Made by a program: the position numbers and the translations under genes
Shown here: positions 29,610 to 35,912 of the stretch, piece by piece
How the letters are laid out: every line of letters begins with the position of its first letter
How positions within the stretch are numbered: position 1 is the first letter of the stretch
Sequence record: OP617745.1
DNA: 64,000 nt
Direction: 5' to 3' (one strand)
The notes under the pieces: model-generated
Databases searched by the model: none
The model's input: only the letters and a program-made list of their open reading frames with translations
What the model was told of the DNA's origin: nothing

Positions 29610-30674
29610 ATGAAAGAAAAAGTTTATGTATATATTGGACGTTTCCAAATTCCACATATTGGTCATGAAGAAGTCCTCAAACATGCAATCAAAATTGCAG
29701 ATCGTGTTATCATTCAGGTCGGTTCAAGTGAACTGGCTCGTGATCCAAAAAACCCATTCACGTTTGAAGAACGTAAGTCAGTACTAGAAGAAATTACAAA
29801 ACGTGTAGCTCAAGATGAATGGAATAAAGGTCGAACTGTTAAAATCGATATTATGCCATTACATGATTATGTATATGATAATAATGCATGGCTAAAAGAA
29901 GTACAGGATAATGTTAAAACATGTACTTCAAGTAATGATATTACTATTACCGGTTGTCGTAAAAATGGTGATACCAGTACTGAATATCTTAACTATTTTC
30001 CTCAATGGAAAAATGACTTCATTAACGAAGTACAAAGTAATGCAAAAGGTACTATTAGTAGTACTGAACTACGCGAAGCTTTTTTTGTCTCTGGTAAAGT
30101 TCCAACTGAATTTGTTTCAAAAGAAACAACAGAATTTCTAGAAAATTTTGTCAGTACTAAACCCGATGTATTCGATAATCTTATTAAAGAATATGAATTC
30201 ATTAATCGTTATATTGAACAAATGAAAGAAGCACTACCTTATGATATTCCATTTATTTGTGGTGATGCTGTAGTCATTAGTTGCGGGCATGTTTTACTTG
30301 GTCGCAGGAGAACATTTCCATCAAAAGGTTCTTTGTGTTTACCGGGGGGTTTTTTTCAAAGTTGGGATGATAAAGATCAAATTGATACTGCAATTCGTGA
30401 ACTAAAAGAAGAAACAAAAATTGATGTTCCTGAAAAAGTTCTTCGTGGTAATATTATAAAAACTGAAGATTTTACTGATATGAATCGTTCTCTCCGCTGG
30501 CGTATTCTTACTAAAGCAGTGTTGATACAATTACCAGATACTACTTTACCAAAAGTTAAAGGTAGTGATGATATGTGTAATGCTCAATGGATTCCATTGA
30601 GTGATATTGAAAAATATCGAGATCAATTTTTTGAGGACCATTATTCAATTATTAATAATTTGTTAAATTTATAA
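29610..30674 (+). CDS. nadM: Bifunctional NMN adenylyltransferase/ADP-ribose pyrophosphatase (NadM-Nudix)
   Basis: GRFQIPHIGH, ISSTELR, Nudix box LPGGF...AIRELKEET, GSDD. Confidence 0.92.
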   Translation: MKEKVYVYIGRFQIPHIGHEEVLKHAIKIADRVIIQVGSSELARDPKNPFTFEERKSVLEEITKRVAQDEWNKGRTVKIDIMPLHDYVYDNNAWLKEVQDNVKTCTSSNDITITGCRKNGDTSTEYLNYFPQWKNDFINEVQSNAKGTISSTELREAFFVSGKVPTEFVSKETTEFLENFVSTKPDVFDNLIKEYEFINRYIEQMKEALPYDIPFICGDAVVISCGHVLLGRRRTFPSKGSLCLPGGFFQSWDDKDQIDTAIRELKEETKIDVPEKVLRGNIIKTEDFTDMNRSLRWRILTKAVLIQLPDTTLPKVKGSDDMCNAQWIPLSDIEKYRDQFFEDHYSIINNLLNL

Positions 30675-30727
30675 CAATGAAATAACATATAAAACGTGGG
30701 AAAAGGATTTCCCCATAAGAGATAACA

Positions 30728-32152
30728 GTGAGAGTTATAAAAACGAAATATAATTATGATTTTTATTATATATTGCCTGATGATTTAAAATCAGAACATA
30801 AATTGCATTCTAAAAAGATAATAGATGATATAATAAAGTTAAATATACCAAATTTGAAAGTTATTGGAATTAATATAAAGTATGAAGATGAATATTCTCT
30901 TAATAAAAAAGATACTAGATTATTAATAGAATATAAAAATATATTATATACACCTAAATATACATCAATAACAAAATCTTTTCGTGGTACAATAGAAGTT
31001 GATAGAAATAATATATATTATTATTTGTATTCAAAACGACCATTTGAAATACATAAATTAGAAATTGTAGATATTCCTAATAAATTTAAAATATTTTCAA
31101 AAGATTATATAACAATAAAATGTCATAATATAGATGTAAATGGTAATTTATGCGAATATGAATATCCAATTACATTAAACAAATTTTTATCCGATAAACA
31201 ATGCCCCAAATGTACTGGACAACGCATTGAATCATTGGAAGAAATAAAAGAACAACTTTTAAAAAATCTACATAAAAATAATTTTGAATTAATAAGTACT
31301 TCAAGTGAAAATTATCCCAAAGAAGCAGATTTAAAAATTAAATGTTTAGATTGTGATACAATAATTAATAAAAAAGTTGTTAGTGCTAAAAATGGTAATA
31401 TTATATGTGATGTTTGTGATACATATAATAATACAAATTTTATTGAAAAAATATATAAACATACCCCATTTTCTAAAAACCCAATGCATTATTATAAAAT
31501 AGATGATATAATTAATATTTCATCTATTATTGGTAATATGTGTTATGATTGTGGTTTTGAAGATATATGTACAGTTCAAGATGCTAAAAATGGTAAAAAA
31601 TGTCAATTTTGTAAAGGAAAATATACAAATGAAAATGTATATTTTCGTATAAAACAAAAAAGAAATTATGAATCTGAAGGTATTAAAATAATTAATATAC
31701 CTGACGTAAATGAAAAAGGGGTTTATACAAAAATACATTATTTGTGTAAACGTAACCATGATTGTTATATGTCAATATCAAAATTTAATTTAGGTCAAAA
31801 CTGTAAAAAATGCTTAAAATATGAATTATCATATGGTGAAAAAGAAATAGCATCATTATTAGAATATTCTAATGTATCATATATAGAGGAATATAAATTT
31901 GATGACTGTAGAAATATTTTTCAATTACCATTTGATTTTTATTTACCTGAATTAAATATTTGTATAGAATATGATGGTGAACAGCATTTTAAATCAATAC
32001 CATTTTATGGCGGGGATGATAAATTTAAGAAACAACAAAATAATGATCAAATTAAAAATCAGTACTGTGAAGATAACAACATCAGACTGATAAGAATTCG
32101 TTATGATGAAGACCCAAAAGAAATATTGACACGAGAGGGTATCATCAAGTAA
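30728..32152 (+). CDS. Homing endonuclease-like protein: CxxC repeats plus C-terminal PD-(D/E)XK/Vsr-like nuclease
   Basis: C-terminal LPFDFYLPELNICIEYDGEQHF closely matches 24443-25378; lies between nadM and NAMPT. Confidence 0.75.
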   Translation: MRVIKTKYNYDFYYILPDDLKSEHKLHSKKIIDDIIKLNIPNLKVIGINIKYEDEYSLNKKDTRLLIEYKNILYTPKYTSITKSFRGTIEVDRNNIYYYLYSKRPFEIHKLEIVDIPNKFKIFSKDYITIKCHNIDVNGNLCEYEYPITLNKFLSDKQCPKCTGQRIESLEEIKEQLLKNLHKNNFELISTSSENYPKEADLKIKCLDCDTIINKKVVSAKNGNIICDVCDTYNNTNFIEKIYKHTPFSKNPMHYYKIDDIINISSIIGNMCYDCGFEDICTVQDAKNGKKCQFCKGKYTNENVYFRIKQKRNYESEGIKIINIPDVNEKGVYTKIHYLCKRNHDCYMSISKFNLGQNCKKCLKYELSYGEKEIASLLEYSNVSYIEEYKFDDCRNIFQLPFDFYLPELNICIEYDGEQHFKSIPFYGGDDKFKKQQNNDQIKNQYCEDNNIRLIRIRYDEDPKEILTREGIIK

Positions 32153-32229
32153 AAAGAATTATTACACAGAGTAATAATAAATCAGAGAACGTAGTAGTTC
32201 TCTAACTTAAACTAAGGGAGTCTTAGAAA

Positions 32230-34278: not shown

Positions 34279-34288
34279 GAATTAATCG

Positions 34289-35026
34289 ATGATTAGTACT
34301 AAATTCATTAAAAAAGCTGGTGATAAAAGATTACTAATCATTTCTGGAAATGGATTGTCAATGGATAGTGGTTTTGATTTATATGATATTCCTGATAATT
34401 TTCAGATAAATGATGTATGTAATATTGCCAGTTTAGGTACAAAATATCACGTAGTACATTCTTATTATAATACTCTTAGAGTTAAATTAAAAGATATTGA
34501 ACCAAACGAAATGCATTACTATATTAAATCATTACAAGATGAGTATGGTGATAACTTTTTACACATGACCAGTAATGTAGATGATTTATATACAAGAATT
34601 GGTGGCACTGAATTAAAATTACATGGTAATATTAAAGAGGTTATAGAAAACTACACCGCTGATGGTTCTGAAATAGAAATAAAAGAATTAGGTTATGAAC
34701 CATATATTCCATGTAGTGGTATTTTTTCTAAACCCGGTGTTACATTAATTGGTGAGTTCCATAGTTATTTTTATGGATATAAAACCCCAATTTATGAAGA
34801 ACGAAATGAAATACTAAAATCATTAAATGAAAATGATACTGTAGTAGTAATTGGAAGTTCTGATTCAGTACTGAAATGGAGCCATTTAATAAATGAGAAA
34901 TGTTACACAGTACTAATCAATATAAGAAAAAATGAAAACGATCATCGTTTCAATGAACGAATTTATAAATCTTGTTCCAAATCTGTATTAGATTTATCTG
35001 GAATAATTTCAAAAAGGATGGTATAG
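34289..35026 (+). CDS. Sir2/sirtuin-family protein (divergent)
   Basis: IISGNGLSMDSG (GAGxS variant), EPN..H, TSNVDDL, catalytic LHG, KPGV, VIGSS. Confidence 0.8.
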   Translation: MISTKFIKKAGDKRLLIISGNGLSMDSGFDLYDIPDNFQINDVCNIASLGTKYHVVHSYYNTLRVKLKDIEPNEMHYYIKSLQDEYGDNFLHMTSNVDDLYTRIGGTELKLHGNIKEVIENYTADGSEIEIKELGYEPYIPCSGIFSKPGVTLIGEFHSYFYGYKTPIYEERNEILKSLNENDTVVVIGSSDSVLKWSHLINEKCYTVLINIRKNENDHRFNERIYKSCSKSVLDLSGIISKRMV

Positions 35027-35580
35027 TGGAAAAAATTGATTTCGGTAAAAGAAGTACCAGAGCCGATTTTGCTTTTTGTTGGATTTTTGCCAGAGATTGT
35101 ACTCCATACTCTGGATATGATGATCAACTTGGAATTGATAAAGTAAATTTAGTACTAGCACAATTACGTTTTGATGGTTGCATTGGGGCGTGTGGTGGTA
35201 TGGTGGAAAGTGATGATAATTCATTAGAAGAAGCTGTACAGCGTGAAGTACTGGAAGAAATTGGTTATACTGTTGATTTAACACATTTAAAACCACTTCT
35301 AAGCTTGCGTTTACCATCAGGCAGCCATTGTCATAGCTATAGTTATGAAGTTGATTACAATGAATTACAAAGCATTAGAGATGGTGCTTATAGAGGAATG
35401 CATTTCAATCCAGAATGTGCTGGTGTGAATCTTTTACATATTTCAAGATACACAAAAGGTTATGGAAATGAATGTGGATATAATGTATTATTAGAACAAC
35501 ACTGGAGTGGTACATCAAAAGAAGAATTTATGTACCTTGTAGAGACAGAAAATCTATTAATTAGTTATTTGAAGGAATGA
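35026..35580 (+). CDS. Nudix hydrolase, NUDT16-like
   Basis: AQLRFDGCIGACGGMVE...LEEAVQREVLEEIG; probable GTG start at 35026 coupled to the sirtuin stop. Confidence 0.8.
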   Translation: MEKIDFGKRSTRADFAFCWIFARDCTPYSGYDDQLGIDKVNLVLAQLRFDGCIGACGGMVESDDNSLEEAVQREVLEEIGYTVDLTHLKPLLSLRLPSGSHCHSYSYEVDYNELQSIRDGAYRGMHFNPECAGVNLLHISRYTKGYGNECGYNVLLEQHWSGTSKEEFMYLVETENLLISYLKE

Positions 35581-35912
35581 TAATGGGATACCAGTTATTT
35601 TTAGATGATATTCGTGACCCATCAAAATATTATAGTACTGAAATGGTACTATGTAGATCTTATGATGAAGCTGTCAAATATGTAGAAGAACATGGAATTC
35701 CAGAATTTATCAGTTTTGACCATGACCTTGGAGATACTTCTGATAATGAAAAAACTGGTTATTCATTTGCTAAATTTTTGATTGATTATATGATTGATAA
35801 TGGTATCAGTACTGAATTCAAATATAATATTCATAGCTCAAATCCAGTAGGTGCAGATAATATCGATTCTTATCTAAAAGCTGGTTTTAAATATCTAAGA
35901 GAAAATATGTAA
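35577..35912 (+). CDS. Cyclic-phosphate-processing receiver-like domain protein
   Basis: LFLDDIRDP, RSYDEA, ISFDHDLG, KTGY, HSSNPVG. Confidence 0.7.
   Translation: MIMGYQLFLDDIRDPSKYYSTEMVLCRSYDEAVKYVEEHGIPEFISFDHDLGDTSDNEKTGYSFAKFLIDYMIDNGISTEFKYNIHSSNPVGADNIDSYLKAGFKYLRENM

Follow-up and report, generated by a model that had tools for sequence, protein, structure and literature searches.

In Vibrio phage KVP40, the Nampt/Nmnat pair known as NARP2 rebuilds nicotinamide adenine dinucleotide (NAD+) and overcomes Thoeris, DSR and related NAD-depleting systems (Osterman et al., 2024, bioRxiv 10.1101/2024.02.11.579819), and NARP2 alone also cancels aRES (10.64898/2026.01.28.702374). Another group of phage genes has been described computationally. 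The cREC domain was named by Iyer et al. (2021, PMC7824862), who also proposed that it processes cyclic ADP-ribose (cADPr), and a sirtuin/Nudix/cREC/PIN neighbourhood of jumbo phages, including Serratia phage BF, is described in section 3.7.3 of Iyer, Burroughs, Anantharaman and Aravind (2022, PMC9503650); for this neighbourhood they put forward, as a prediction only, NAD+-using RNA repair in which the sirtuin would act like KptA/Tpt1. No experimental paper on cREC or on the phage sirtuin clade was found in the literature searched. Here, we describe a 64,000-nucleotide stretch (the window) of Klebsiella phage KP13-7 (OP617745.1), a RaK2-like jumbo phage, in which NARP2 and the RaK2-lineage form of the type-1 sirtuin neighbourhood of Iyer et al. 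meet within 6.3 kb (window 29610–35912, or 215610–221912 of the record; KP13-7 coordinates minus 186000 give window coordinates). The locus is not new as a genome observation, since the genome is public and the sirtuin neighbourhood had its computational description in 2021–2022. What is new is the two-unit anatomy of the locus, the full extent of the sirtuin operon, the loss in this lineage of the 2H gene and of the Phe-Arg pair of the sirtuin NAD loop, the modular exchange of the two units, the existence of the operon without NARP2 in Escherichia phage 121Q, and a recurrent but facultative proximity between Sir2 and NARP2.

The closest relatives of each unit differ from the window in specific ways. 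As in KVP40, NAMPT and a bifunctional NMNAT-Nudix protein of the same domain architecture are encoded side by side; however, the pair in the window, known here from sequence, is split by a homing endonuclease gene, and its NAMPT alleles have been swapped between close relatives. KP13-7 and Serratia phage BF are members of one jumbo-phage group, and the window locus fits the type-1 neighbourhood except for the linked 2H gene, which Iyer et al. (2022, section 3.7.3) treated as an RNA-repair 2H. Nudix and cREC, fused in BF, are separate in the window, the NAD loop of Sir2 is degenerate, as in the whole RaK2 lineage, and the operon is interrupted by an HNH element. In that section, the description of the BF type makes no mention of the adjacent NARP2 or of two small membrane or exported proteins. 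The type-2 neighbourhood of the same paper (rV5/Mydo type, Rnl1-cREC-sirtuin) also places a sirtuin of this clade beside cREC, but its RNA ligase belongs to the same gene run, whereas in the window Rnl1 and Pnkp lie 21–24 kb upstream and the neighbours are Nudt16-like and PIN-PhoH. Accessory enzymes are also known for another NAD+ reconstitution pathway: Adpp, a Macro protein whose gene lies within the NARP1 operon, acts against aRES (NARP1-AP; 10.64898/2026.01.28.702374), and RyDEP partners NARP1 enzymes and counters Thoeris (2026 preprint). Like the window, these systems join an NAD+ reconstitution cassette to enzymes processing ADP-ribose derivatives. However, their accessories feed ADP-ribose into NARP1, whereas the window cassette is NARP2, which does not use ADP-ribose, and the extra genes of the window form a separate unit that also occurs without NARP2.

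In yeast, Tpt1/KptA removes RNA 2'-phosphates in an NAD+-dependent reaction that yields nicotinamide and ADP-ribose 1'',2''-cyclic phosphate, on which a cyclic phosphodiesterase and a phosphatase then act. The likeness of the yeast set (Tpt1/KptA, the 2H protein Cpd1 and the Macro protein Poa1) to the sirtuin operon would be functional only, as no fold is shared: a sirtuin would stand in for the ADP-ribosyltransferase (ART) fold of KptA, cREC for 2H, and Nudix for Macro.

The features of the locus, identified by Pfam and PHROG scans of the open reading frames (ORFs) of the window and by full-length matches in the PDB, are the following:

29610–30674, plus strand: natV, nicotinamide mononucleotide (NMN) adenylyltransferase plus Nudix, NadM-Nudix type (Pfam CTP_transf_like and NUDIX; phrog_395, E 3e-81)
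30728–32152, plus strand: homing endonuclease of the EDxHD/HNH type, between natV and nadV (phrog_559/9084, HNH or homing endonuclease)
32230–33702, plus strand: nadV, nicotinamide phosphoribosyltransferase (NAMPT) (Pfam NAMPT_N and NAPRTase; phrog_448, E 1e-142)
33709–33733, plus strand: intrinsic-terminator-like hairpin closing the NARP2 unit (11 pairs, then TCTTTTT)
33766–33942, plus strand: ORF of 58 amino acids (aa) between the units, two-transmembrane membrane protein (ORF list; Muenster annotation, membrane protein, two transmembrane domains)
33949–33977, plus strand: sigma-70-type promoter TTGACA-N17-TATAGT, read from the sequence (11/12 match)
34012–34278, plus strand: first operon gene, two-transmembrane membrane protein of 88 aa (ORF list, Muenster annotation)
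34289–35026, plus strand: phage-clade sirtuin (Pfam SIR2, PF02146; CobB, E 6e-14)
35026–35580, plus strand: NUDT16-like Nudix hydrolase (PF22327, 59.4 bits against a cut-off of 27; NUDIX)
35577 or 35583–35912, plus strand: cREC (cyclic-phosphate-processing REC-fold), predicted phosphoesterase (PF20274, 88.4 bits against a cut-off of 27)
35912–36232, plus strand: 106-aa protein with an N-terminal anchor or signal (phrog_14661)
36244–37182, plus strand: HNH-AP2 homing endonuclease inserted in the operon (Pfam, PHROG)
37231–38688, plus strand: last operon gene, PIN plus PhoH, a PhoH2-like predicted RNase and RNA-dependent ATPase (PIN_4, E 1e-20; PhoH, E 1e-41)
38753–38781, plus strand: next consensus promoter (12/12), downstream boundary of the operon (promoter scan)

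Since the hairpin stands between nadV and the promoter, the interval reads as two transcription units: a first unit predicted to end at the terminator, and a second predicted to run from the promoter at 33949 to 38688. The hairpin begins seven bases past the nadV stop and is kept in a 78%-identical relative (locus L245). The promoter (TTGACA at 33949–33954, a 17-nucleotide spacer and TATAGT at 33972–33977) is intergenic and is kept in RaK2, phiKp_21 and L245; promoter-like matches across the region are not above expectation (68, against 77.5 in shuffled sequences), so that its weight comes from position and conservation only. Unit 2 then proceeds in the order 88-aa protein, Sir2, Nudt16-like, cREC, 106-aa protein, HNH insertion and PIN-PhoH, with overlaps between the Sir2 stop and the Nudix start (TAGTG), the Nudix stop and the cREC start (ATGA), and the cREC stop and the 106-aa ORF start (TAATG). 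A single weak match was called as a plus-strand terminator in unit 2 (36916–36935), inside the HNH insert. KP13-7 and phiKp_21 carry this insert, whereas the 106-aa gene runs straight to PIN-PhoH in RaK2, Muenster and L245. Some clade loci have weak homologues of the 88-aa protein in the corresponding position. Public sequencing runs that contain the sequence are wastewater libraries labelled RNA-Seq, probably DNA, and three transcriptomes sharing a coded species label (presumably the host) with the best sequence holder contained 0 phage reads.

A first-pass annotation of this DNA had proposed a cluster of five genes (natV, nadV, sirtuin, Nudt16-like and a receiver domain) within 6.3 kb. All five are present at the coordinates given above, as Pfam, PHROG and PDB matches confirm, and their catalytic motifs are intact; the sirtuin lacks the Phe-Arg of the NAD loop. 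Its reading of natV and nadV as a NARP2-type salvage pair agrees with their domain architecture and their adjacency, as does its description of the downstream genes as NAD/ADP-ribose-related and translationally coupled with the overlaps just listed. The three-gene operon that it placed behind the promoter keeps its promoter and its coupling, but not its extent, as the 88-aa gene comes first and the run continues to PIN-PhoH. The annotation thus overlooked PIN-PhoH, and also the prior published description of the neighbourhood.

The locus is shared by KP13-7, RaK2, Muenster, K64-1 and phiKp_21, jumbo myoviruses of the genus Alcyoneusvirus; the interval is 96–97% identical to RaK2, Muenster and K64-1, and 88% to phiKp_21. 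Its region has a G+C content of about 30%, the plus strand holds nearly all genes, and the 64-kb window contains no tRNA gene.

The product of natV matches Synechocystis NadM-Nudix 2QJO end to end (E 1.6e-60) and contains the GRFQxxHxGH motif, and that of nadV matches mammalian NAMPT over its full length (PDB, E 3e-66). The two genes are 1.5 kb apart, with the homing endonuclease as the sole gene between them, and natV adjoins NAMPT in 73 of the 80 NAMPT loci listed in a survey of viral loci; by domain architecture and adjacency, they are assigned as a NARP2-type NAD+ salvage pair. The intervening endonuclease is mobile: it is shorter in RaK2 and Muenster, and absent from K64-1 and phiKp_21 according to coverage gaps and annotations. 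More broadly, three homing-endonuclease-type genes (30728–32152, 36244–37182, and a DUF723 gene at 24443–25378) vary in presence among relatives that are 96–100% identical.

In sirtuins, the Cys4 zinc module shapes the peptide cleft, and the Phe and Arg of the cofactor loop GAGxSxxSGIxxFR contact NAD+. Both elements are altered here. No CxxC pairs were found anywhere in the phage sirtuin clade, whereas such pairs are seen in the distant cellular sirtuins aligned with it. In the RaK2 lineage alone, the cofactor loop reads GNGLSMDSGFDLYD and carries a deletion, so that Phe-Arg is replaced by Tyr-Asp and the loop is shortened; the other clade members in the alignment have GAGLSAESGIxTFR. The catalytic His112, Asn96 and Asp98 are invariant in the alignment. 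An AlphaFold2 model (predicted local distance difference test score, pLDDT, 87.9) has the class III deacylases CobB and SIRT5 as its top Foldseek matches, with a TM-score of about 0.75. A Tyr-x-x-Arg succinyl-lysine pocket of the SIRT5/CobB kind was considered for this protein and dropped, as the conserved Arg is at Y+4, not Y+3.

NUDT16 belongs to an RNA-end and ADP-ribose pyrophosphatase family. The Nudt16-like protein of the window starts at the GTG at 35026, which coincides with the beginning of the PHROG alignment, and not at an upstream TTG; it matches human NUDT16 over residues 42–178 (E 4e-10). Its Nudix box is intact, with G57, G58, E61, R73, E74, E77 and E78 invariant in the clade. 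An exhaustive profile search of 1.84 billion representatives yielded 440 clusters at 50% identity, a small number for a family (a word-index protein search gave 5 close relatives only). Elsewhere, its members are fused to Ham1 (ITPase), HD, ankyrin or cREC domains, and in a 120-kb phage, the only informative locus outside the clade (L248, from a narrower alignment), the gene adjoins those of a dUTPase and an exoribonuclease. A tie to ADP-ribose is therefore not intrinsic to the family.

The cREC protein keeps all family-invariant residues (LFLDDxR, FDHDLG and HSxNPxG; D8, D9, R11, D46, H47, D48, H84, S85 and N87 in a diverse alignment), and its fold is receiver-like, with TM-scores of 0.6–0.67 to response regulators in an Atlas structure search. 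Structure and literature searches found no solved structure or assay for cREC. Its only Pfam match is cREC_REC, and no kinase was found among the ORFs scanned. The protein described at first pass as a receiver domain thus does have the REC fold, but its sequence places it in the cREC subfamily (PF20274) and not among two-component signalling receivers. In many relatives (CBB, BF and GAP32-type phages), Nudix and cREC form a single 301-aa ORF.

The 106-aa gene lies 3' of cREC at each clade locus that reaches that far. In its product, four cysteines are invariant, whereas the N-terminal anchor varies and resembles a lipobox in some relatives; export is probable, which would make the protein an unlikely partner in cytoplasmic chemistry. 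A start that overlaps the stop of a gene for a cytoplasmic enzyme is odd for an exported product. PIN-PhoH, which ends the module in each clade locus reaching that far, keeps the PIN acidic residues and the Walker A and B motifs (GSAGTGKT, DEAQN).

The genes of unit 2 are not decaying. Against L245, the ratio of nonsynonymous to synonymous substitution rates (dN/dS) is 0.19 for Sir2, which is thus under purifying selection despite its altered NAD loop, 0.16 for Nudt16-like, 0.11 for cREC and 0.25 for PIN-PhoH, similar to the 0.145 of natV. L245 was the reference since the phiKp_21 operon is near-identical, and hence uninformative.

The arrangement is conserved well beyond the genus. Clade loci that reach both ends (CBB, GAP32, BF, Munch and Yersinia types) have the order natV-nadV, 1–4 kb, then 2H-Sir2-Nudix/cREC-106-aa-PIN-PhoH. 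Because more than 20 related jumbo-phage loci preserve this gene order, and because Nudix and cREC are fused in many of them, the clustering cannot be put down to chance. A 2H gene lies directly 5' of Sir2 in 21 clade loci (e.g., L005:7941–8387, 148 aa), where its product passes the Pfam threshold for Acb1, an anti-CBASS family (55 bits against 27). No 2H homologue was found anywhere in the 64-kb window, and the gene is also missing from RaK2-like phages and 121Q.

The two units nevertheless have discordant histories and recombine independently within the genus. The Sir2 operon of phiKp_21 is about 100% identical to that of the window, but the NAMPT of this phage only 60%; L245 shows the opposite pattern, with 99% for NAMPT, 78% for Sir2 and 59% for PIN-PhoH. 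The phiKp_21 NAMPT gene (L163, 5140–6612) is an allelic replacement of window 32230–33702, with a synonymous divergence (dS) of 1.23, and natV of phiKp_21 is 92% identical; the recombination boundary is thus inside or beside the NARP2 cassette.

The adjacency of NARP2 and the operon holds across the whole jumbo-phage clade, save 121Q-like phages. In 121Q, a ClpP-like gene and a 221-aa ORF are followed by the intact operon, and NARP2 is absent at the syntenic site; the order Sir2-Nudix-cREC-transmembrane protein-PIN-PhoH thus survives a change of flanks. The operon stretch of 121Q has matches in 33 Escherichia-phage records, 22 of them at ≥95% identity, and Escherichia is not among the genera with at least 20 NAMPT-positive records in a tblastn search, so 121Q-like phages, at least, appear to be without NAMPT. 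This judgement was based on the syntenic site and the genus counts; the NAMPT locus listing lacks even RaK2, and absence of 121Q from it was not used as evidence.

For a broader view, 80 viral loci of 20 kb were fetched around relatives of each of cREC, Sir2 and NAMPT, and the counts that follow refer to the matches listed. Outside the clade, natV or nadV lies within 10 kb in 7 of 64 Sir2 loci and 1 of 73 cREC loci (Fisher p=0.025). Phage sirtuins are found near NARP2 in at least six lineages, and the NARP2-nearby state changes at least seven times on the Sir2 tree. In the reciprocal direction, a Sir2 or Nudt16-like gene lies within 10 kb of none of the 72 non-clade NARP2 cassettes listed (upper 95% bound, 4%). 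The link between Sir2 and NARP2 is therefore real and recurrent but facultative, and is probably most simply read as a supply-and-demand association of an NAD+ consumer with an NAD+ maker, not as one obligate system. In one Sir2 locus, L101, nadV directly adjoins Sir2. This locus comes from the same unrelated 120-kb phage as L248 (IMGVR_UViG_3300033696_000004), in which nadV immediately precedes a phage-clade Sir2, a gene for a concentrative nucleoside transporter stands beside natV, and the Nudt16-like gene is about 21 kb off, next to the dUTPase gene.

Across lineages, the recurrent partners of cREC and of the phage sirtuin clade are RNA-end enzymes: Rnl1, HAD phosphatases of the PNKP or Swiss-army-knife type, and calcineurin-like phosphoesterases. 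Calcineurin-like phosphoesterases lie within 5 kb of cREC in 25 of 80 viral loci, and RNA ligases of the Rnl1 or PHA02142 type in 18 of 80. Of 117 immediate cREC neighbours outside the clade, those that could be recognised belong to Metallophos, RNA ligase, HAD_PNKP and RlaP, and a Pfam scan found no Nudix or Sir2 (a Nudix-box regular expression missed even known members, and was not relied on). Sir2 is paired with cREC in four loci of other lineages (L100, L108, L151 and L156); in L100, from a 137-kb phage, the Rnl1, cREC and Sir2 genes overlap. The commonest family beside sirtuins of non-jumbo phages is the Swiss-army-knife RNA-repair HAD, and in T5-like phages PhoH lies about 4 kb from Sir2. 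The window itself encodes a calcineurin-like phosphatase (16877–17623) and two RNA-end enzymes located 21–24 kb upstream of the sirtuin operon on the same strand, both hypothetical in the KP13-7 annotation:

10253–11398, plus strand: T4-type RNA ligase 1, equivalent of RaK2 gp464, about 23 kb upstream (RNA_lig_T4_1 and T4_Rnl1_C; RaK2 paper)
12586–13530, plus strand: polynucleotide kinase/3'-phosphatase (PseT/Pnkp), equivalent of RaK2 gp470 (AAA_33 and HAD_PNKP, E 1e-43; RaK2 pseT annotation)

Rnl1 and Pnkp are possible distal partners of the sirtuin operon.

The analysis establishes the gene identities and intact motifs, the anatomy of the operon, purifying selection, gene fusion, synteny and the separability of the units; every substrate and reaction assigned to unit 2 is our inference. 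The best explanation, to which we give a probability of roughly 0.45, is that of two adjacent, exchangeable units, in which unit 2 would spend NAD+ on the processing of RNA ends and ADP-ribose phosphates and NARP2 would resupply it. NAMPT would convert nicotinamide and phosphoribosyl pyrophosphate (PRPP) to NMN, which NatV would adenylylate to NAD+, while its Nudix half would hydrolyse ADP-ribose. The zinc-less sirtuin would use NAD+ as an ADP-ribosyl donor to a phosphate acceptor, the likeliest being the 2'-phosphate at RNA ends or junctions cut by host or phage ribonucleases. It would thus be an analogue of Tpt1/KptA, and its products would be nicotinamide and ADP-ribose 1'',2''-cyclic phosphate. 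The Nudt16-like/cREC pair would then split the pyrophosphate and open or remove the cyclic phosphate; alternatively, by analogy with the Pnkp kinase-phosphatase fusion, it may heal RNA 5' and 3' ends directly. PIN-PhoH would cleave and remodel RNA. Finally, the neighbouring NARP2 would remake the NAD+ used by unit 2 and by host NADase defences, the link between the units being selected for but not obligatory.

Several points weigh against this explanation. The activities of the unit 2 enzymes are predictions in every phage that carries them. The nearest structures to the sirtuin are lysine deacylases (CobB, SIRT5), not phosphotransferases, and the replaced Phe-Arg and the shortened loop make NAD+ use by the RaK2-lineage sirtuin uncertain. 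No 2'-phosphate remains after the T4-type Pnkp/Rnl1 route, so that a phage with this route has no obvious need of a Tpt1-like step, and both genes lie outside the operon. PIN nucleases leave 5'-phosphate and 3'-OH ends, for which no healing is required. The contexts of Nudt16-like outside the clade (dUTPase, Ham1, HD) point to nucleotide-pool hydrolysis. The 2H gene is missing here, and that of the relatives, by its Pfam assignment to the Acb1 family, would equally fit signal degradation. Lastly, the neighbourhood statistics come from small samples of partly related loci.

It has also to be considered that the operon is a counter-defence module, an extension of NARP2 comparable to NARP1-AP and RyDEP. 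In that case, Nudt16-like and cREC, together with the Acb1-like 2H in relatives, would destroy NAD-derived signals or toxic metabolites, such as cyclic ADP-ribose isomers, ADP-ribose 1''-phosphate from RES-type NADases or ADP-ribose cyclic phosphate, while NARP2 rebuilt NAD+ alongside. The clade-wide position of the operon beside NARP2, the Acb1-threshold 2H genes in 21 loci and the NARP accessory precedents (the Macro protein Adpp against aRES, RyDEP against Thoeris) are all consistent with such a role, as are the cADPr processing proposed for cREC (Iyer et al., 2021) and a sigma-70-type promoter that suggests early expression. However, this leaves no role for the sirtuin, and NARP2 alone cancels aRES and other NAD depleters. 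The operon is moreover kept without NARP2 in 121Q, and its genes are within 10 kb of none of the 72 other NARP2 cassettes listed. Furthermore, the commonest partners of cREC, RNA ligases and RNA-end phosphoesterases, would be needless for a degrader of signals. We therefore regard this possibility as unlikely.

Alternatively, the genes may be neighbours only, held together by inherited synteny in an early accessory region and acting on unrelated targets: Nudt16-like as a sanitiser of inosine nucleotides or the nucleotide pool, Sir2 as a modifier of host proteins, and PIN-PhoH as a general RNase/ATPase. The fusions of Nudt16-like to Ham1 and HD, its dUTPase neighbour in the 120-kb phage, and the probable export of the 106-aa protein, which would then be unrelated to cytoplasmic chemistry, can be read in this way; so can the free insertion of homing endonucleases in the region and the clade-specific NARP2 linkage in the reciprocal survey. 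Mere proximity does not account, however, for the Nudix-cREC fusion in many relatives or for stop/start overlaps running through four genes. Nor does it explain why the order from Sir2 to PIN-PhoH survives in 121Q, where the flanks change, why Sir2 pairs with cREC in four loci elsewhere, or why Sir2-NARP2 proximity recurs on the Sir2 tree. This explanation appears distinctly unlikely.

Protein-linked ADP-ribose can be trimmed by human NUDT16, and O-acetyl-ADP-ribose is a substrate for hydrolysis by Nudix enzymes. On this basis, and in line with the first-pass annotation, the locus could be a single restore-and-erase system with NARP2. Its sirtuin would strip acyl or ADP-ribosyl groups from proteins or nucleic acids, ADP-ribose marks or O-acyl-ADP-ribose would be trimmed by the Nudix enzyme, and cREC would complete the clean-up. 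The similarity of the sirtuin to CobB and SIRT5, its retained catalytic His and xGE substrate loop, and the adjacency of the operon to NARP2 favour such a system. However, nothing specific points to the removal of ADP-ribose or acyl marks: Pfam and PHROG scans of the operon found neither an eraser (Macro, ARH or NADAR) nor a writer of the ART type, the Cys4 zinc module is lost clade-wide, and the RaK2 lineage has also lost the NAD-loop Phe-Arg. Across lineages, the genes found as partners encode RNA-end enzymes. As for the completeness claimed for the system, its halves are separate transcription units with different histories that are also found apart, as in 121Q and in the 0/72 reciprocal count. 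We consider it improbable.

A closed NAD+ cycle, in which both units would recycle both halves of NAD+ and the operon would be the first accessory arm of NARP2, is very improbable: the sirtuin would yield nicotinamide and ADP-ribose 1'',2''-cyclic phosphate, Nudt16-like would convert the latter to AMP and a phosphoribosyl cyclic phosphate, cREC would produce ribose 1,5-bisphosphate, a PhnN-type host kinase would make PRPP from it, and NAMPT and NatV would join PRPP, nicotinamide and ATP into NAD+, so that, if true, NAD-dependent repair of RNA (or of another substrate) by the phage would be self-sustaining in NAD-depleted cells.

NAD+ is a central battleground between phages and bacteria, and accessory enzymes on NAD-rebuilding pathways are emerging (NARP1-AP, RyDEP, NARP3). 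Among large enterobacterial phages, some of which are candidates for Klebsiella therapy, the sirtuin/Nudt16-like/cREC/PIN-PhoH operon is widespread. Once its role is settled, whether RNA repair, destruction of immune signals or recycling of NAD by-products, the whole phage sirtuin clade would gain a function, and the same answer would explain why NAD-consuming and NAD-making genes meet recurrently in phage genomes.

Other features of the window were noted. Two ClpP-like protease genes are present (23678–24379 and 28926–29522); the second, which is divergent, lies directly 5' of natV, and its 121Q homologue is located shortly 5' of the sirtuin operon. At 21414–22784, just 3' of an ATP-dependent DNA ligase gene, lies a gene for a protein of 456 aa with four CapR-homology repeats (PF21817, E 1.5e-24). 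The gene at 27612–28082 encodes a dCMP deaminase (T4 Cd-like in RaK2 and Muenster), and its KP13-7 label, the tRNA-specific adenosine deaminase tadA, is probably a mis-annotation. At 44580–47809, nrdD and nrdG are found with a 321-aa ORF (46408–47373) between them. Finally, G+C content rises to 0.36–0.43 in 48000–64000, and past about 48 kb the GC skew flips sign and the genes move to the minus strand, a change that may mark a module boundary.

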